A stretch of 47,859 nucleotides of DNA, from contig LPNZ01008512.1 of assembly GCA_001655205.1 (NCBI GenBank), positions 1 to 47,859 on the forward strand. Reading direction: 5' to 3'. This DNA comes from Lenisia limosa (Eukaryota > Protista > Breviatea). The notes beneath the pieces were generated by a model. It did no database searches. It was not told the origin of the DNA and worked only from the letters and a program-made list of their open reading frames with translations. Positions 31,742-44,364 of this stretch are shown here, in pieces (position 1 is the first letter of the stretch; each line of letters opens with the position of its first letter). The translations under genes were made by a program, and so were the position numbers.

Positions 31742-34700
31742 ATGGTTATAAAGTCATCTCCGGAGCCTCTTCTCCAAAAAAGTGACTCCACTGATACAGA
31801 CCTCAAAGTTCATACTGAAGATGTTGTCCTGATCAAGCCATCCCCTTCACCAGAGCCAAGGCCAGATATACTGACCCCAGGTAAAAAGAGTATTGTTAAG
31901 TTTGTGTTAAGTGCCTGAAGCAGGGGGTATTTTATTCATTTCGTATCTACCTTATTTCTGTCCACTCGTCTTGTTTTTTCATTTTCATTCAGAGGAACGT
32001 GAGAATGAAGCACGTCTTGCAGAGTGGCGGAGAAGTGGAATTGTTCCTGCTGGAGGTCTGAGAACGTGATATTTCGTGGTTGACATATCCAGCGAGTGAA
32101 TACGACGTTAGAGGTATCTTCCTGAAGACCATCCACCCTGAGAATACGTTCAAACTTATCTTCGACTGGGTTATCGCCTTTATCAGTGGGTGTCTTCACC
32201 TTGTCCTAAGAGCTCTAGTCATGGTGACGTGCTTCATTGTGCCGACTGAATTAGCCTTCAACCAGGCTTTACCAACGTATATGTCAGTCTTCATCGACGT
32301 TTTCTTTGTGTTGGACGTCGCCATCAACTTTCGAACTGGATACAGGGAAGGTTGGTGCAACAGCTTCTGGCTGACTCTTGAAGGTGTGGCGTATGTTGTT
32401 ATGAATCACAAGTTGATCCAAAAGAAGTACCTCAAGGGATGGTTCACGGTGAGGGGTCATCTATTTCGGTAATTTAAATGTTGTAACTTTAAAATACTTC
32501 AATCTTTACCAGAAGATGTGTAAATTTTTCTGCAAAAAGGGCCAAAATGAAACAAAAGAATTGATGAACCCCAAAAAAAAAAGACATCATGTATTACTAA
32601 TATACCAACATAATATGAGCTCTTTAAGCATCTGTACATCATATAGTTGTAGATATGATATGATATTGATTTAATTATTTCTACTTTCGTCGTCTTTGTC
32701 TTTCAGAAGATGACTCAATGATCCAGGTGGACTTCTTGTCGTCAATCCCTTTTGATTTGATCTTCTTGATCGGGAATATGGGTCCCACAGGCCCGTACCT
32801 CCTACTTATTCGTCTCGTTAAGTGAGTGAATCCTCAAAACCATTACCATTTTCGACCCAGTTGCACATCTAACCTCTCAGGGTCCTTCGCCTCCTTCGTC
32901 TCTTGCGGCTTTTGAAGGTAACTTGGGACAATGGCAGGAGTTTGATCTCATGATCTAGGGGAGAAAGCTGAACCGTGTTGCTGGAGGCGCCTCTGTTGTT
33001 CGCACTTTGGTGCTCATCATATCCCTTGCGCTTCTCGCTGTAGGCACGGACGCTTTCCTTCTTATATTTGTAGCATTGGGTAGCCTGTATCGTTTTTGCA
33101 GTCAGCTCACCTCACGACGATGGATGGGTAGCCGACCAAGGGGTATGATGATCCGTTATTGATGCTGATTGCACAGATTAAGGACAGTGATTTCTTTGAA
33201 CAGTATACAACTTCAATATACTTCGCCTTGGTATCCCTCACGACTGTTGGGTATGAGGGACATTGTTTTCCTTTGATATATTGATGAAAAATGTGATGAT
33301 TTGGATATATCTTCAACCAGATAAAACATTATTCTCAAGTATTTTGCACATTTCTTGTGTGAAAAAAATTTACATGACCTATAATGGACTTTTCTAAATT
33401 TGAAACTTAGATACGGAGATATTTCACCTATTCGAGCCGATGAACAGTGGACAGTTTCAATCATTATCCTGTTTGGCACCTTAGTGACTGGAATGGTGTT
33501 TGGTTCCATGACAAGCATTGTTGAAGGTAATGAAACCAGTGAATATGACGTCATTCTATTAGCAATGGACAGCAGCTATCGACGTTATCGCAATAAACTG
33601 AACCAAGTTAATGAGTTTATCAAGTGAGTCAAATGAATATCCCTCCCCATAACAAACATGAAAGTTGACATTTTACCGTTAAGTTTCTATAAGATATCGA
33701 GATCTTTAGCTGAGCGACTTCGCATTTACTCAGATCAGCACTGGGAATTGACTAACGGTCGTGAGGTAGCCGGGATTGAACCTCTGATACCATTTCAATA
33801 GTCGGATGACCCCTTTAGTGGGATCTCTTCTTCAACATTTTACCACGGCCTGTTTCGGCTGAAATTGCGATTGAAATGCACTCGTAAGTCGGATACGTCA
33901 CATGACCATGTAGGTCCCTCATCAAAAGCTGTGAGGCCTTCCGACAAGTGTCGCCTGCCTTCATAAGAGAACTGGCACCCTCCCTCAAACTTTCTCTCTG
34001 TGTCTCAGGTGACTATATCATCAGACAGGGCGATATTGGTTAGTGGGACTGTTTCATTTTGATGCCTAAGGTGATAGAGTGTACTTCATTCGAAGTGGAA
34101 TGGTCAACCTTTACATTGATGGAGAGGTAGGTTGCTTCTGTTCTGGCCTGGGTTGAACTCATGCAGAAAATCGAACAACTCGGTCCGGGAGACTCTTTTG
34201 GTGAAGATTCTCTCATATCACCCGGACATAAAGTCTCGGTATGAGCTGTTGCTAGTAATTTAAATATGACCGGATCTCCTTTTTATTATCTGAATCTGTT
34301 GCATAAGACGGATTTAGGATGGCTTACCTCCTTCATGAATATAGGTCAAAGCAAAGAGTTTCACTGTTCTTCACTTCATTGAACATGAAACAGTAACAGA
34401 TATCCTCAAAAGTTGGTGTTTCTCATTATAATGAACACACGTTCTAAATTTTCACAACTCCAGAGCACCCTGGTGATGTCTCGCCTTTTTGTGAGGTAAT
34501 GAGACCCTCAAAACAGCAATTTCCTTATATTGTAGTCCTTGGCAAAGATTCAGTACACTGGGGAAGAAAAGAAGAAGAAGAAAAAGTCCAGTGGTTGGAG
34601 CAGCATTAGTCTTAGGGAAATTAAGCAACTTGAAAGAATCAACTCTAAAGTAAGCAAGCCTGTACCTTTATTCTCTCTAGACCCCTTCATTACAAAAGAT

Positions 34701-35090: not shown

Positions 35091-38000
35091 CTATGCGTAT
35101 TGTGACAGCAGCTTGCGAAGCGTAATTAAATTGATTGGTTTGGGTACGAAGTCCTGCAGCATCAAGGCCACAGCACAAATGCACATCTTTTGAAATACGA
35201 GTCGAGTGACATTTTCAACATAATCGAGGCTGTTTGGCAAACCTGCATTCCAGAGTCAAGACAGGCCTTTTGGTCACTCGGAGCAACTTGTCCCGTGACA
35301 GCAACAATGTTGACGGGGCGCTCCACTGACATTCGAGATTCCATTTCACCTGGGGTGTGAGTGTCAACCTCCCTACGAATGGCTTTGGTAGCTTCGATGC
35401 CGTCCATAACAGGCATTTGGTAGTCCATAAAAATCATGCGATAGGGTCTGAAAGAATAAGTTCTGAGTATGCTTCTCACTTATCCTCTTCGACAGCTTCG
35501 CTGACCATGTCAAGTGCTTCTTTACCATTATTTGCAACTTCAACCTAGGGAATGAACCGCTAATCACAATCTTACAATAGACCCTGCCTTTTTGATCATC
35601 AACGCAAGCACTTTCTAAAGGAGTTATTCCATTTTGGGTCTGACCTGGTTGACGGGATTATCTTCGGCCAGCAGAACTCTTGGCATTAGAGGCGACGATT
35701 CTGAAGAGTCAAGATGAAGCAAATACGTAAATGCGTACGGTCTGACGCATGAGACGGCGTTGACACAGTGGAGGGGTTCGGACACGCGGGGATGGGGAGG
35801 GTGTTTTGTGACGGACTGTTTGTCATCGAAACATTTGTCGAAAGCTGGGTGGTGAGTCAAAAGCGCAGCCAACTTTGAGGGGGGGAAAGTAAGGCCCTTC
35901 CTTAGTGTCAAGAATAACTGCTGGTGTGGCAGGTGACATCAGTTCGGGGCTTGGAAACGAGACCATCGGCAGGTCTGGCATGGACGGTGAATTCTCAAAT
36001 TGGTGTACGGTAATTTCCGGAAGTGGGATGATGATGGCCTAGACCGGTGACAATATAGATGTGTGCCAACTTTCAATGAACCCTTAATGACTAGTTTCAG
36101 CGCCGAGAGTGATGTTGGTTTGGGGAGTAGTTCAATGTTAAGAAGCCCTGAGACCTGCAGAGTTAGTATAGTACTTGTGCGTACCATTGAGTTACTTGAG
36201 AGGTGAGACAAGATGCTTCGGACTTTGGACATTTCAGAATACGCCGCAGTGAAGGCTATGGTATGCGGCCGTGCGGAAGGCGGAATAGACTCAAAGGCCA
36301 GAATAGACTCTTTGAGGAAGCGTGCGTCTTCACTGGTCATGTCGAGTATGTCTATATTTGTCAAAAACACAGGGTTATTGGATTTTCCTTACAGTTTTGG
36401 TGTTTGTGTTTACCAACAGTCTAAAACGGTCAAAGAAATTCAACAAGAACTTGCCCTGGTAGTCTCACTTTCAAATCTCCGCTTGAAGAGCAATAATGGT
36501 ATGTAGGTCTTCGCACAATCACCAGTGCTGGGGGTGCCGCTGGTGGGGTTCGAAGGGACAAAATTGCATCTGACAACTGGAACATATGAGCAAAAAAAGT
36601 GGAAATCTTGTCATTGATAACTGTAAGCATAGTAGCCACAGAATTATGTCAAACTTGGTGAGAGAACAGCAAAAAATTGGGGAAATAATAGGCTCCACAT
36701 GATATTTAATCAACCTTCAGCCTACAGAGTGGAACAGGTTTGGTCTAGCATAGAGAGCCATGACGTCACAAACCAGGCTGTCGTCACTCGTCTGGTCTCC
36801 AATTATTACGACTGAGGGTCTGTTCTCAGCAACAACTACATACATAAGACGAAAACAGCCCCACTTCTAGTGTTTAAAGGAGACAACGCAGAGCTGTTGC
36901 GACGGCTGTGGATTTTGCTGTGAACAAGGAGCGGAGTGGTGTGTAGTGAGCTTCTTGGAGAGTGCCTTGGGGAACACGCAGGTGAAGACAATGGCGAACG
37001 CAATTTCGGAGATCTGAGAGAGTGACGACAACCCGAAGCAACACACCTGATCTGTCTGATGCGCTGCTGGAGGGACAGTATTGATGATGAGCTGGCTGGA
37101 GGCGCCACTTTCAAAAGCTCGGGCTTCGCAAACGATGACATCAAAGGAAACACCTGGGCAATAAGACCGTGCTGCGAATAATGGGGCGTCTACCAAAGTA
37201 AACGTCGTCCCTTCGTCAAGCTTCGACGACACCCTTATGGTTCCACCCAAAATCTCCACTAAATGCTACATGGTGAGTGGGATGATGTATATGCTGAAAT
37301 TCAGCAAATGGGCAGGTAATAAATTAGTATTTCGATGTGAAAGCTCATTATTTTTCATAACTGATAAGCTATCATTTGTAACTGCTTATAGAGTTAGAAT
37401 ACCCATACTTTTGTGATACTTAGGCCAAGGCCACTTCCACCATATTTGGACCTGATTTCCGGCTGAAGCTGATCAAAGGGGTTAAACAGACGATGTAAGT
37501 TCTCGGGCGACACGCCTCTTCCGGTATCGGACACCTGGGGGTCAGGTTGCTATTTTGGTGTCTTACCTTGACTTCAATTGTTCGTCTTTGCGGCGGTTCC
37601 TGAGAAATGAGATGGAGATGTGGGCCTACATCATCCATGACAAGGGATGAAGGGTCAATGAATTCGTCATCACTTAGACGGGCTTTAATTGTCACCTATT
37701 GCATGAGATGAAAGAAGGGATGAGCCACCTCTCCCTTGTCGGTGAATTTCACAGCGTTTGACAGTAAGTTGAAGAAGACTTCCTTCAAACGACCAGGGTC
37801 TGAAATCACCTGCAAATCATAACCAATGAGGAATGAAGAAGACAAACCTCAAGTCGTGAGAGGTCAGTGGAGGCAATTACGTTCAGTTCCAGGTTCTGTA
37901 CAGTCAAATGACAGCACTTCCGTCTGTACCTTAGTTTGTGCTTTGAGCCCGAATATCATGGCAACTTCATCGATCATTCTAAGGAGTAAAAAAGGGCACT

Positions 38001-41000
38001 TTTTCTAACCCTCTAAAGGAGAACTGCAAAAGGGACAAGTCTGAAGTGTTCATTTGGCCCGTCTGGAAACATCATGGAAAGCAATGAATCATAGAATTTA
38101 CCAAATTAATATTTTAAAAGTCAATGAAAAAAACTCTCATTCTTACGCTCAAAGTACTGTGCGAAAGGACTTGAGACGCCATTCTAAGCAAGTCCTCCCC
38201 TCCGGCTCGGATAACGTCAACATGTGGCCTCTGCTCTTCTGTCAGGTCCGTTTCGGCAAGCAGACTGGCGGAACCGATGATGGTTGTTAGGGGAGTGCGG
38301 ATGTCATGACTGAAGCGTTATTACCATGTATTCGTTACCTAAAAGCCGCAAAGAACTTCCTGGTCATGGCCTCTACCTCCTGTGCGTTACCTTCAGCACA
38401 CTCGCGAAGTCGCATCTACATTGTCAGCATCAGGATGAGACATACTTCACTCTCCAGTACGCTACATGCAGATTTAATTGCCTTGGTCCGGGCGTTGACC
38501 GTGGCTTCGAGTCGGTGTCGTTTCTACTCATGTCAAACAGACAGCTTATTACCTCCATCAGCTGAGCAATTTGTTTGCACTGGATTAAATCGCGTATGAT
38601 CAGGCTTGACGACGTGTTAGACTAAACCATGGGTTACTCATAACTAGCCCACCTCAAGAATCAGACCTGGCAGCTGACATGACCCTTCGGACCCCTCTCT
38701 CCACCAGGACTCTGCTGCGTCTTGCATAATGGTAATGACGACCCTTGCTTGCTGAAGCCAACACTCTGGCAGCTTGATTTCTGATTGTTCTGGAGGGCAA
38801 GCTAGAACTGGACTGGTTAGGTGCCAAAAGCAAGGAGATTTGCGAACTTTCACTTGGCGTGAGAGGAATGAAATTATGATGGCTTGAAGAAGGACCAGTC
38901 TCCATACTACTGCGACTGCTTGACTGTTGCAATCCTGTCCCGTCAAATTAAAGCACACGACAGAACACCCACCAAGCTGGGTTAGAATTTTCAGTCGTGT
39001 CAGCTCCCAAGACATGAAACTGTCAGCGTGGATGACTTGTTCAGTAGGCTGCACTGTAGAGTGGTCCTGTTGATGAGTTGCCGGCACGCAACGTACATAA
39101 ATTTTTGAATTGATAGACCTCCAAGGAAGTCTCATCAATGTCAGCGCTTCAGGCAAGATAGGGACGTGCAAGTTTGGTATAATTCCGGGATTATTGTCCA
39201 CAATAATGCGACTGGGCTGACACATTATTGAGGGTCTTGCTTACCGAGAGTGACAGACTTTCGTAATGGTCTTGAAGAGGTTCAGCAAGCCAAATAAGAG
39301 ACAGTATCAGATCAATGGCACTTTGGCAAACCTGAAGAATGAGGGAGAATATGGCCTACCACCACGGGTGATAGGATTTCGTGTTGTCGCATGAGAGACG
39401 TCAGCGTCGTTCCAGTTATTGAAGGGTAAATGCAGACCTTAAGAAATAAACAACCAGAAGAACTCACATCCACCATCTCCTGGTCACTTTCGGCCACATC
39501 GTTGACAATACTCATGTCCAAAATTGTTACACCTGAGAGAGCAGAAGACGAGACAGTTCGGGAGGTTTGGTTGGAGCGACTACTGTCGAAGTGGATGTTA
39601 GTGGAGCGGAGAGCAGAGTTGCGAGTATTTGGCAGAGTGGAACTATACCCTCTTCTATGTATAGAGCGTCTGAGACAGTTATTCTCAAATAACTCTCACG
39701 ATTCTTTGAAACTGCCGTGTGGCCGGATCGGTTTGAGGGACTGACCACGCCGCCGTGCAAGAGAAGGTTGTGGCAGCGTCCTGCACATATTTCGATCAAT
39801 CATCGACAGAAATTCATAGGATATGATTTAGGTATCTGGCCGAAGCCGTCCTCACCATCACACAAAATGCATATGGGTCTTTTCAGATCAAAGAAATAAA
39901 TGATCCTAACACTGCTCACTGGAATAAATGATCCTAACACTGCTCACTGGAATAAACGATTTTAACACTGCTCACTGGAATAGTGGTGATTCATCAAAAA
40001 ATGGCGTGGAAAAGGGGCTGAATGGGGTATCGGAGGGATCAGCTTGTGGGCTTGCCATTGCTGCTGCAGCAGTGTACGGACAATTGTCCTGAACAGTAAC
40101 AACTAGGGTGAACAGTAAACAGTAATAACTTTGGTAAACAGTAACAACTTGGGTGGACAGTAACAACTTGGTGAACAGTAACAACTTGGGTGAACAGTCA
40201 CAACTTGGGTGAAAACTCACTTGGAAACATGGGACGCACGCCAGCCTTTCTCTCCAATGTGACAAGCGTATTCGATGTGTTGCAAGGGGGGTGTGAATAC
40301 AGGGAACCTACACAGTGAAACAATTTCATAGGAGGAAGCCCAAAACTACTTTAAAAAAGGTATCTCGTGCGAAGGACATTTGCGCCAAAAAACGTTCTCT
40401 TCTCTATTATGTGAATTAAAGACGACCCGAAGAGTTGGGATATATACACCCCGCAAACAGATAGGCCGGCCATAATGAACCTCTCAAAAAGAGTCGGACT
40501 CAGGCCTGGGTGGTCCTCCAAGGTCGGCCATTCTACAGCCCATCTCAGCCTTCCCTCGTTGGACGCTACAATACCTAGTGGTGTTAAATGGATGCCCATC
40601 CCACCAATTGAAACCCTCCCCCATTTCCCAACCTCCAGTAGCAACGTTACGTAATCTCGTGGGGGATAGCTCAATTGGAGGTACTGGTATCTGAGAGGCG
40701 TATTGTTGGAACGACGCGGGTTTAGCAGAGAAGGATGCGGAGCGTATGGCGCGACATGCATAAGGTGTGTCTAATTGTGAGTTCACTTCGGTCATCACCA
40801 ACTTTCAATGTCAATATCAGGAATATCAGTAGAAAAAGAAGGACACAGCTTTTCATTCAAAGGGCAAATCTACACTTAATAAATAGTCAAAGAGCAACCA
40901 ACATTGAGAGGATTGTCACATGTACATTCAGGCTTGAGGGAAGCATGAAGGGAGAACATTGGTCCTTGGAGTACCTGAAGAGCTAAGCTCAGGTGGTGAA

Positions 41001-44000
41001 CTTACTTCGTTTAAAATGGCTTGATGGAGCAAACAAGGGGTTGCCTTAAAGATTGGACACGACAGAAAAGCACCCGAGATATTGGTTGTGGGGTTGCTGA
41101 AGGATCAGATGCACACTGTACATACTGGGTGAAAACTTCAATGTTGACAGCGTTGGAGTACGTGACGACAACAAAAGCAGTGGACTCGGTAATTGCAGCT
41201 GAACTGTACCGTTTGAAGCATCTTCGACATTGTCGCCTCTTTCGCCTTGGGTGTCAAATAAAAAAATATGAAATGATGTTTCTAATCCCACTTACACCAA
41301 GTAGACGAACAGAATGATGACCAGTCCCACAATAACAGCGAATATCACAATGAGAACTATAGCCCAGACCGCTAAAAGGTAATAAGAATTAAGGACGAAC
41401 GAAGGAGGTCGCTCGACGCCTGGTCTGGCTCAATAAGAAAATAGGAGTTCCCGACGAGTTTTGAAGGCGAAAGCTCATTAGCAACTGTGATCAGTGAAAT
41501 TCATCGGTTTTGGTGCTGACTCACGTGCTAAAGCTCTAATGTTGACTTCACCAGGTTGAGAGAAAACCAGCTTAATGAAGTCGGTACTGAAGTGGGGCTG
41601 GAATTCATGAATGGAATTATCAAAAATAAACAAATATTGTTATTTCTACCATATCCTTTTTTGAGACAGGATATAATTTGAAAAAAAATTTGAAAAAAAA
41701 TTGGCTCTGCTTACGCTAGTGTTGCTGGGTTGTGTGCCATCGGTGGTGAAGTACACTTCTGTCCCTTGGGCAGCTGTAATAACAACCTGTTGCCAATTTG
41801 AGATGCAAATACATAACTACCTACTTACCTCAAGAGGAAAATTATACGATCCAGGGTCAGGCGAAATCTGTGGTGTAACATACTGAAAGGACGGAAGGAT
41901 CATTCGGATCCTGAAAAAGAGAGTGCCAGGCTTACAGATGGATCAGCAGCAGACCCTTTTAGTTGTGCAATTCTTGCGGAGTCCACCTCACCTGAAAGTT
42001 GCTCCAGGCCCTAGCGCCGAGTAAGCCAATAATGTAATGGTTATGCAGCAATGTGTAGCTTGATTGATTATTATTCCCATCCATTCAATGCTATGAATAA
42101 CTTAGTTACACCAAGCTTACACTGAGGGATAAAACGCCAGAAACAAAATTGTCCCGCTTTCTGGACACTGAAACGCTGAGTGAACTACTTTGATCGTCAA
42201 GGAACTGGCCGATTTCTCGAAAGGACGTAACCTCCTCGCTGCCAAGGCCAGCCTAATCTGTCAATAGATGGAAGGAGCTCACCGAGCTTCGCACCGCAGC
42301 GACGAATGGACGGCTTGCCATGAGGCCTCGTGGAATCTCAAGAAACGCTGTCAGCACCTGCGTTGATCAGTCGGTACAACTTCGAGCAAACGTCGTCAGT
42401 CCAGGGCGGGCCGGAGTACGGAAGAGCAATTTGGGTGCTCAAAAGTGCCACATCATCATGAAGACTCGCGTCGCTGGCAATGAACTGGTTCATAAGAGCT
42501 GACATCTGGACAGTTTCATTCTCTATTCCCACAAACCAAGTCGAAGTCAGGCGAGTTGTAAGTGGGTATCCCACCAAAGTTTTGAGAAATGGACACCGCA
42601 ATTCTCTGTGAAGTGAACAAGACTGCCCCTTTTTGACTTACTGAATCAAACAAGCTATCACCCATTATGTTGAGATCTTTGGGATCTCCACGAGCGTCAG
42701 CAATCAAATAGTAGAACTGAACAATAAGTTTTAACCTACGGCGTACCATCCCTAGTTCAAAGTTCTGGGCGAGGGCGTTGAGAGGGAGACGATAAAGACG
42801 GAACTGCTTCATTTCTGCCATCCCATATTGTTCAATAAACTGCGTTCTGTACCCAATTGACGAGAACGCCTAAATGAAAGTCATCCACTCCCATTCGTAC
42901 CATGAGAGTGACATTGTTGAATAGCAGGTCAGAAACACTGGGAAATTCATTTTCCTCTCCTGGTAGACGAACTTGGTGCGGGTAGAAGCATTCATTGACA
43001 ACCATGTCTCCAAGAGTTGTTGATGTGTCGAAAGCGACCCCACTTGAGTACTAAGATGTGAGTACCGCGTTGATACGATTCTGACACTCTCAGCAGACCG
43101 AAATGTCACCACTTTTAAGTTGTTCAAACGACTCGAAAATCACCTCATCTTGTCTTGAGAAGAGAGAGCTCCAAAGCAGAAGCGTCTCAGCCATTGACGT
43201 GTCTGTATCGGTAATTCGTGAGGAGACAGAACGTCGCATTCACCATACAAACCGTTATGGTTGATAGCAAAAAGGTACTTTCCATTACTGCGCTGCCTCC
43301 TGCATGCTTTGAGCAAATCAGGCATTGTTTTAGGCAAATCTGTGTAACTCTTGAAGCCAAAAACGGGAAGGGATGGCTGCGAAGTCAAATGACACTCTGG
43401 ATTACCTCGTAGAATCTAAATCCAGCATGGCTAAAAAATGCACCTAAAGCTGGTACAGCTCCATAAGTTAGCAAAGATACTTGAACATCTGCATAGTCAG
43501 CCAGAACTCGTGAGTGCAGACATACAGGGGAAAAATAGTGAGTGCAGACATACAGGGGAAAAATAGTGAGTGTATGCTCTTCTTCAGATCTATCATCAGG
43601 TTAAAGTCAATACTGGTGCTGAGGTACGAAGCAACGTTGGGAAACTGCAGCTGATTCAACGCGTTGTCTTCTGAGGTTTACAATGAAAAATCCTTAACTG
43701 CTCACTTTCAAGAACTACATCAACAGGGAAGAGCATAGTGATTAATGGCTTATGTTGTATCGGATAGAAATACTGAAGATCAACAGAACCTCCAGGATAA
43801 CCTTGGGACCAATAGTCCAAGCTAAAGCGTTATCTGTCCTTCAGGTAAGGAGTCTTACCAATGTGGCAATCCATTCACAATATTACTATTTAGAACTGAA
43901 ATTGCTTCGCTATCACTCTAAAGGGAATCATTAGATACGAGAGTGGAATAGCATCCCAAGAAGTGAGACGAGAGTTACACAAGCTAAAACCATTTACCTT

Positions 44001-44364
44001 CACAGCTCCAAAGCTTGCTCGTGGAGAAAACACTTGAAACACCCCACTTGTATCCACTGTCACATTTGCCATATTCAAGCATACTAAGGTATCAAGCACA
44101 CTAAGTCGTGCCAAAATATCATTATTAGTGCGATTAAATTATAGAAACTATTATGGGGGGAGGAACCAAATGTTACAATGTTTACACTACGTTCAAAAGA
44201 ATGGCAATTGAAAATTACTTTATAATATTAAATAAACTGCTATGCTTTGGTAGAGTAATAAAACAAGGCGTACAAAAGGATTGAGACTGTGAGAAGACCC
44301 CTTGCAAGATGGCGACCACGAGGAGAAAAAGCGGCAATACCCCCTGCTGGCTGCGACTTGCCAT
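35091..44364 (-). CDS. Single-pass receptor hybrid histidine kinase (SP, PBP2-like ectodomain, Fn3-associated domain, TM, possible pseudokinase, HisKA, HATPase, degenerate REC, REC)
   Basis: H-box SHDIRTPL (~38310), N-box NLLSNAVKFT, G1 DTGRGV, F/G2 LFNPF...GGSGLGL. REC: LLAEDNPVN, MIFMDYQMPVMDG, VAVTG, FVPKP. TM AVWAIVLIVIFAVIVGLVIILFVYLV followed by RKRR. Signal peptide MASRSQQGVLPLFLLVVAILQGVFS. The HK/REC core is certain. That the whole 9.3 kb is one gene is inferred from uninterrupted exon-intron structure. Confidence 0.85.
39895..39982. repeat. 28-bp tandem repeat x3 spanning a splice donor
   Basis: AATAAATGATCCTAACACTGCTCACTGG occurs twice, plus one variant copy. Confidence 0.95.
40090..40213. 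repeat. ~19-bp tandem repeat x~6.5 filling an intron
   Basis: Unit GAACAGTAACAACTTGGGT, with degenerate copies. Confidence 0.9.
43510..43572. repeat. 28-bp tandem repeat x2.25 spanning a splice donor
   Basis: GTGAGTGCAGACATACAGGGGAAAAATA x2 followed by GTGAGTG. Confidence 0.95.

Follow-up and report, generated by a model that had tools for sequence, protein, structure and literature searches.

Does one stretch of the genome of the breviate Lenisia limosa encode a cell-surface receptor that signals through a histidine kinase, or do two separate genes lie next to each other there? The stretch is on contig LPNZ01008512.1 (GenBank assembly GCA_001655205.1), of which positions 1 to 47,859 were analysed; we refer to these 47,859 nucleotides as the window. 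An earlier note, made from the sequence alone, had proposed that positions 44364 to 35091 hold a single type-I receptor histidine kinase (HK) whose ectodomain resembles a bacterial sugar-binding protein. On the minus strand we find two coding units, each of them well defined: unit 1 (44364 to ~40876) and unit 2 (~38621 to 35091). Unit 1 is a predicted type-I membrane protein, while unit 2 reads as an intact hybrid HK core that falls into the ordinary eukaryotic hybrid HK class. The reading we prefer, at roughly even chances, is that the two units form one gene, a receptor hybrid kinase. As far as sequence comparison can tell, a periplasmic-binding-protein (PBP) fold cannot be demonstrated for the ectodomain.

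Gene models of the locus

The locus was read on the minus strand from 44364 to 35091 and the exons were spliced by hand. The surrounding DNA has a GC content of ~42-47% and is intron-dense, with frames interrupted every 50-150 nucleotides. Local introns are mostly 25-50 nucleotides long, with some of ~100 nucleotides, and all 29 of those curated at the locus fall between 25 and 118 nucleotides. The donors vary (GTAAGT, GTGAGT, GTTAGA, GTACAG and others) and the acceptors are AG. An automatic exon chainer, with either generic or locally trained parameters, missed known exons and was not used for the final model. A locally trained codon score placed 25 of 28 held-out exons correctly, which it managed only by means of the stop codons; when these were disregarded, it called 18 of 27 correctly. 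Pfam searches were run on stop-free exon pieces, and hydrophobicity is given as the Kyte-Doolittle (KD) maximum over 19 residues. All of the strings quoted in the earlier note were found on the minus strand, in or close to the places that it listed.

A type-I membrane protein

Hand-splicing of unit 1 gives a single open frame of 788 residues, built from 23 exons and 22 GT-AG introns of 25-118 nucleotides. Exon 1 (44219..44364, donor GTAATT) carries the start and a signal peptide. The ATG at 44364 opens MASRSQQGVLPLFLLVVAILQGVFSQSQS, and the exon can be read directly as MASRSQQGVLPLFLLVVAILQGVFS, followed by QSQS... across the junction. The signal peptide claimed for this position is present, with a KD of 1.97. 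Exons 2-16 (41992..44100, minus strand) follow in one frame through GT-AG introns of the same size range and encode an ectodomain of ~520 residues that belongs to no recognised family. Exons 17-19 (41525..41910) encode a small membrane-proximal module, and exon 20 (41296..41428, donor GTAAGT) encodes a strong transmembrane (TM) helix, IVLIVIFAVIVGLVIILFV, with a KD of 3.72. The helix is followed by a 50-nucleotide intron and then by the basic RKRRQCRRCFKR, which begins the predicted cytoplasmic tail. This tail, of ~110 residues, is encoded by exons 21-23 (40876..41245, hand-spliced across introns of 50, 29 and 31 nucleotides) and runs to a possible stop codon, TAA, at 40878-40876. The secreted or type-I membrane layout that had been proposed for the upstream part of the locus thus stands, given the signal peptide, the TM helix and the basic residues on its inner side.

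The ectodomain carries the strings DLPKTMPDLL, LLFNNVTLM/AF and FRLYRLP. Exon 7 (43376-43253) contains DLPKTMPDLLKACRRQRSNGKYLFAI. LLFNNVTLM/AF arises where splicing removes the 31-nucleotide GT-AG intron between exons 9 and 10, and FRLYRLP is in exon 10. The least certain exons of the ectodomain are 15 and 16, in which residues 523-541 form a hydrophobic stretch (KD 1.81). No relatives of the ectodomain were found in the protein collections searched, namely Pfam, the PDB sequences and a set of 1.84 billion protein representatives. When a 76-residue piece of it was compared with the last of these, the sole match was P0001, an open reading frame (ORF) call from the same contig.

The public copy of this contig (ENA ERZ3820729 NODE_167) is a metagenome-style assembly with prokaryote-type ORF calls and no eukaryotic gene model. 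Two of these calls, P0001 and P0122, the second of which was likewise the sole match to the kinase side, read in-frame TGA as tryptophan and ignore the introns. Database 'proteins' of this kind are therefore artefacts, and as a consequence the real genes are masked from homology searches.

The membrane-proximal module is the part of unit 1 outside the membrane that does match a known family. Across exons 17-19 the string runs TPQISPDPGSYNFPLE, then VVIT...VYFTTDGTQP... and then ...VNIRALA, and the spliced module reads TPQISPDPGSYNFPLE / VVITAAQGTEVYFTTDGTQPSNTS / PHFSTDFIKLVFSQPGEVNIRALA. A Pfam search with the exon-18 piece (41649-41816) returned CHB_HEX_C_1 (PF13290; 27.5 bits, cut-off 22) and Fn3_assoc (PF13287; 23.0 bits, cut-off 23). 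These matches cover positions 9-36 of the 67 in the profile, and the flanking exons fit the remainder by eye only. The exon holds the hallmark ...VYFTTDGTQP... strand, and with both scores at or above threshold the beta-sandwich domain named in the earlier note was recovered. Modules of this type are typical of glycan-processing surface proteins of bacteria, among them chitobiases and hexosaminidases. In bacteria they adjoin a glycoside hydrolase, whereas here the module adjoins a eukaryotic TM helix.

One further feature of unit 1 is a perfect 28-nucleotide tandem duplication in intron 5 (window positions 43510-43572, minus strand). It is present in 2.2 copies and takes in the end of the exon together with the GTATGT donor, yielding two identical candidate donors 28 nucleotides apart. 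The duplication has the look of a doubled splice junction, or of a trace left behind by an insertion.

A hybrid histidine kinase

Unit 2 opens with a long signalling helix that runs into the H-box. It is encoded by three exons (38339..38621, minus strand) that form the in-frame chain SNTSSSLIIRDLIQCKQIAQLME / KRHRLEATVNARTKAIKSACSVLESE / MRLRECAEGNAQEVEAMTRKFFAAF. The HisKA exon (38147..38309) carries the predicted phospho-accepting histidine in FAAF-S-H-DIRTPL; its H-box reads FAAFSHDIRTPL and it matches Pfam HisKA with 49.5 bits (E 4.4e-13). HATPase_c is spread over seven exons (37194..38062), with a Pfam score of 38.7 bits on the exon that holds G1 and G2, and has an N-box FFNLLSNAVKFT, a G1 box DTGRGV, an F-box FNPF and a G2 box GGSGLGL. 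From the signalling helix through the G2 box, the chain (38621-37194) consists of 11 exons and 303 residues in an uninterrupted frame.

Between the ATPase and the receiver lies a linker rich in serine and proline (35701..37193), in which several frames are open and Pfam recognises nothing. Kinase and receiver may share one polypeptide: they are on the same strand, and the 1.5 kb that separate them (37193-35701) contain no stop-bounded gap that would force a split. The receiver itself has five exons (35091..35700), with a GTAAGA donor at 35575 after exon 2, and scores 32.3 bits against Response_reg. Its motifs LLAEDNPVNQ, MIFMDYQMPVMDG, AVTG and VPKP retain the acidic pocket, the phospho-accepting aspartate, the threonine and the lysine. 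The stop codon TAG occupies 35093-35091, exactly where the earlier note had ended the gene. With all boxes kept and all three Pfam matches in place, the HisKA/HATPase/REC core is intact as described there. A scan of metagenome contigs with the HisKA exon did not reveal an orthologous locus; at best a contig matched at 55% over 51 residues, and none of the flanks had ectodomain-like sequence.

One gene or two

The preferred reading, that units 1 and 2 form a single receptor gene, draws on their arrangement and on the paths between them. Both units are on the same strand, the sequence between them has neither a gene on the opposite strand nor a further domain, and no sensor or TM helix belonging to the kinase itself can be recognised in the favoured frames. 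In-frame paths that join the units exist. The stop at 40876 is avoidable by a 33-nucleotide GT-AG intron with the putative donor GTTGGT. Beyond it, a 32-nucleotide GT-AG intron reaches a single-copy frame of 106 residues, whose coding score is the highest between the units. From these features we infer continuity at the even chances given above.

The rival that survives best is a pair of adjacent same-strand genes, for which the appearance of a receptor would be due to adjacency alone; we put this at somewhat less than an even chance. The first gene would encode a type-I membrane glycoprotein, composed of the orphan ectodomain, the CHB_HEX_C module, the TM helix and the ~110-residue tail, and would end at the TAA at 40876. 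The second would encode a cytosolic hybrid HK with a long low-complexity N-terminal region. Its candidate start is the ATG at 40056..40058 on the minus strand, which was read directly (ATGGCAAGC..., MASPQADPSDTPFSPFSTPFFDESPLFQ; MASPQADPSD...). Cytosolic hybrid HKs of this kind, with no sensor that can be recognised, are the norm in non-plant eukaryotes (PMC6944256).

A number of observations weigh against a single gene and in favour of the pair. Unit 1 is a complete frame with a natural stop after its tail of 110 residues, and the in-frame ATG at 40058 and the start at 44364 share the context ATGGCAAG. Tandem and high-copy repeats lie between the units, where a spacer of ~800 nucleotides contains an array of 19-nucleotide repeats, and the coding score of this interval is no better than that of plus-strand controls. 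The paths that join the units need introns of 190-920 nucleotides, well beyond the 118-nucleotide maximum among the 29 curated introns. In a single protein, some 450 residues of low complexity between the TM helix and the DHp domain would not relay a helical signal in the way that bacterial sensors do. Neither an orthologue nor RNA showing continuity was found in a polyA metatranscriptome run, the protein collections or the metagenome contigs. The polyA run placed no contig on 37001-43000, and the large protein collections hold no transcript-derived protein fragment of either unit. The run shares ~20 words with the locus, all of them within 38300-41400, a stretch that includes a high-copy repeat (39.83-39.95 kb). 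These shared words are best explained by the repeat, at which DNA depth rises from ~40 to >10,000.

That said, the two-gene reading has difficulties of its own. The spacer contains single-copy, coding-strand open frames of 106 and 139 residues (40.35-40.80 kb), which can be reached from exon 23 through the two GT-AG introns of 32-33 nucleotides described above, a typical size for this locus. Moreover, finding a sensor-less HK straight behind a gene for a sensor-like ectodomain and TM helix would be an improbable coincidence, as such a chance arrangement should be uncommon a priori.

Much of this argument turns on the middle region (38622..40875, minus strand), which is free of Pfam domains in all frames. 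Under one gene it would consist of linker exons and long introns, under two genes of a 3' untranslated region, a spacer and the start of the second gene. A SINE or tRNA origin was considered for 40.35-40.80 kb and rejected, given that there is no tRNA and no Rfam match and that the depth is single-copy.

The candidate start lies in an exon at 40088-39976, with the acceptor ttcag and the donor GTGAGC. Abutting its acceptor is a 19-nucleotide tandem array of ~6 copies (40090..40213), found with Tandem Repeats Finder. The repeated unit is CACCCAAGTTGTTACTGTT on the minus strand, and the last, slightly changed unit provides the ...TGTTCAG acceptor of this exon. Further along (39830..39982, minus strand), the same program found three 28-nucleotide tandem units, each with a GTGAGC donor-like site, and these are followed by a high-copy element of 31-37 nucleotides. 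The bin with this element has a word depth of 10,127 in the DNA run, compared with ~40 elsewhere, and many short contig pieces from that run fall on 39830-39866 and 39895-39952. Together with an acceptor at 39782, the repeats at 39830-39982 would make an intron of ~190 nucleotides that is mostly mobile repeat. This is probably an Introner-like intron.

The number of TM helices also depends on how the middle region is read. The earlier note counted one TM helix; the strong helix IVLIVIFAVIVGLVIILFV bears this out for unit 1, but further TM-like stretches occur in alternative frames ahead of the kinase. One of these, AVAVVWRLVLLQAIIISFL (KD 2.32), is at window positions 38860-38920 on the minus strand (~38.9 kb) and is followed by SRQVKVRK. 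Another, LILQVCQSAIDLILSLIWL (KD 1.91), is at 39280-39340, also on the minus strand (~39.3 kb). Because the alternative frame at ~38.9 kb is TM-like, a single TM helix is not established for the locus as a whole. At ~38.9 kb the stop-blind codon score prefers a serine-rich frame with no TM helix (-0.8 versus -5.7), by a weak measure that was right for 18 of 27 exons. If both stretches were real, they would give the kinase a two-TM sensor loop of ~120 residues that is its own, as in Sln1 and AHK1.

The ectodomain and the solute-binding proteins

A different proposal accepts one type-I receptor kinase and takes its ectodomain to be a highly diverged class-II PBP, a Venus flytrap like SBP_bac_1 that senses a sugar or another solute. 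This is close to what the earlier note had suggested, and we consider it improbable. Members of solute-binding protein (SBP) family 1 (SBP_bac_1 and SBP_bac_8; for example MalE, UgpB and YcjN) resemble the ectodomain in size, at ~400-500 residues, and share with it a few short motif-like strings in the same order. Blocks of the ectodomain, namely YGAVP..., PKTMPDLL...SNG, NNVTLMAFSSIG and IMGDSLF, can be placed by eye in the order in which they occur in SBPs. Statistical support for this similarity did not emerge from Pfam, from the PDB sequences, from a hidden Markov model (HMM) of 19 SBPs or from a panel of collinear alignments controlled with real proteins, and the claim of a PBP2 or SBP_bac_1 ectodomain is not supported.

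The searches of general databases can be described briefly. SBP families were absent from a Pfam scan of every ectodomain exon piece (E up to 1-10). The PDB holds hundreds of SBP structures; a phmmer search of all PDB sequences with the four largest ectodomain exon blocks gave no SBP match at E up to 10.

Pairwise alignments require more care. Local alignments of the hand-spliced ectodomain with MalE, UgpB and YcjN of Escherichia coli scored at the level of shuffled sequences. By contrast, an end-gap-free (semi-global) alignment with E. coli UgpB gave z = 5.5, a score that none of 2,000 shuffles reached; when blocks were shuffled for the null instead, z was still 4.8. It fell to 3.8-4.2 once a suspicious match of 7 out of 10 residues to the non-conserved C-terminal tail of UgpB was removed. 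We then compared the ectodomain with a panel of 19 SBPs from Proteobacteria, Thermus, Deinococcus, Firmicutes and haloarchaea, and in place of shuffles used 45 unrelated bacterial ORFs as a null of real proteins. The panel drew on a spread sample from a plasmid collection; a search seeded with UgpB and a scan of genome contigs gave only orthologues of at least 80% identity, and pSymB gave one SBP per 50 kb.

Against this null the signal is gone. The mean z of the ectodomain over the panel was 0.93, compared with a mean of 0.17 for the controls (standard deviation 0.49, maximum 1.35), and four of the 45 controls reached 0.93 or more. Single values of z of at least 4 against some SBP were obtained for 5 of the 45 controls, with a maximum of 6.06, so that controls match the z of 5.8 that the ectodomain had with UgpB on this panel, and the UgpB orthologues scored only 1.29 and 0.49 with the ectodomain. 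The z of 5.5 with UgpB was accordingly rejected as evidence.

The HMM tells a similar story. With filters off, the 19-member model scored the ectodomain at -0.6 bits, and several unrelated ORFs scored higher, up to 4.6 bits. The only alignment that the model made with the ectodomain lies at the expected relative position, with columns 166-282 on residues 222-350, and 8 of 1,000 shuffles scored as high. Taken together, the real-protein null, the HMM, Pfam and the PDB sequences lead us to conclude that the resemblance to SBP motifs is no better than chance, and the proposal depends in addition on the single-gene model. A very remote structural similarity to SBPs is conceivable. The fullest version of the idea, a breviate single-pass receptor hybrid HK with a signal peptide that combines a lineage-specific, extremely diverged SBP-fold ectodomain with a glycan-associated CHB_HEX_C module, is very unlikely. 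We recommend that the sugar-binding-protein reading not be carried forward without structural evidence.

A possible neighbouring gene

Outside the two units, the plus strand at window positions ~32080-33630 has frames with the look of an ion-transport channel (FIDVFFVLDVAINFRTGY). This suggests a channel gene of the voltage-gated or cyclic-nucleotide-gated type that would converge on the 3' end of the kinase.

Comparison with known receptors

All five boxes (H, N, G1, F, G2) of the hybrid HKs of eukaryotes, such as fungal Sln1, plant AHK1 and the Dictyostelium Dhk proteins, are intact in unit 2, which like those proteins has a receiver, here putatively fused, with the key residues in place. 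Long low-complexity linkers are also shared, and a multistep phosphorelay would be expected here. The membrane-bound members differ in their input. In Sln1 and AHK1 a Cache-like loop is flanked by two TM helices, and others use CHASE or ethylene-binding domains (PMC6944256), whereas the sole clear TM helix here is in a type-I unit with a signal peptide ~3 kb upstream, with which the kinase may form one protein. More generally, the inputs of eukaryotic HKs listed in reviews are CHASE, Cache-like loops, ethylene-binding, PAS, GAF, phytochrome and HAMP (PMC6944256; PMC6324907). Neither review mentions a solute-binding domain, in agreement with what had been claimed about the known inputs. According to a cross-kingdom survey, transmembrane HKs are scarce or absent in most protists, with the exception of ciliates (PMC10463195).

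The layout put forward in the earlier note, of a binding module, a TM helix and HisKA-HATPase-REC, is that of the bacterial sensor kinases BvgS and EvgS. BvgS has a continuous helix and a PAS domain between its SBP_bac_3 domains and the kinase, whereas here hundreds of low-complexity residues would intervene. Unlike in BvgS and EvgS, a PBP fold is not demonstrable at this locus.

Under the preferred single-gene reading, a mechanism can be proposed. An extracellular ligand would bind the outer part of the receptor kinase. This ligand would most plausibly be a glycan or another surface polymer, a best guess that we make because the membrane-proximal CHB_HEX_C/Fn3_assoc module is typical of surface proteins that process glycans. 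The module points to chitin oligomers or GlcNAc-type compounds as the foremost candidates. Binding would alter the dimer state, the geometry or the clustering of the kinase, which would then autophosphorylate the histidine of its H-box and pass the phosphate to the aspartate of its own receiver. From there the phosphate would move to a histidine-phosphotransfer (HPt) protein encoded elsewhere. Ligand-induced dimerisation or clustering seems more plausible to us than the helical piston or rotation of bacterial sensors, since several hundred low-complexity residues would separate the membrane from DHp.

Implications

What the locus means for receptor biology depends on which reading is correct. 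If there are two genes, it holds an ordinary hybrid kinase beside an orphan surface protein. Were the very unlikely SBP-fold receptor true, the Venus-flytrap sensor kinases of bacteria would have their first eukaryotic counterpart, and the genome might contain a wider set of PBP-type receptors to which it belongs. If units 1 and 2 are one gene, the protein would represent a new receptor-HK layout, in which a type-I topology is combined with an orphan ectodomain and a glycan-associated beta-sandwich at the membrane. It would extend the short list of extracellular inputs of eukaryotic HKs, which comprises CHASE, Cache-like loops and ethylene-binding domains, and would do so in a lineage near the root of animals and fungi.

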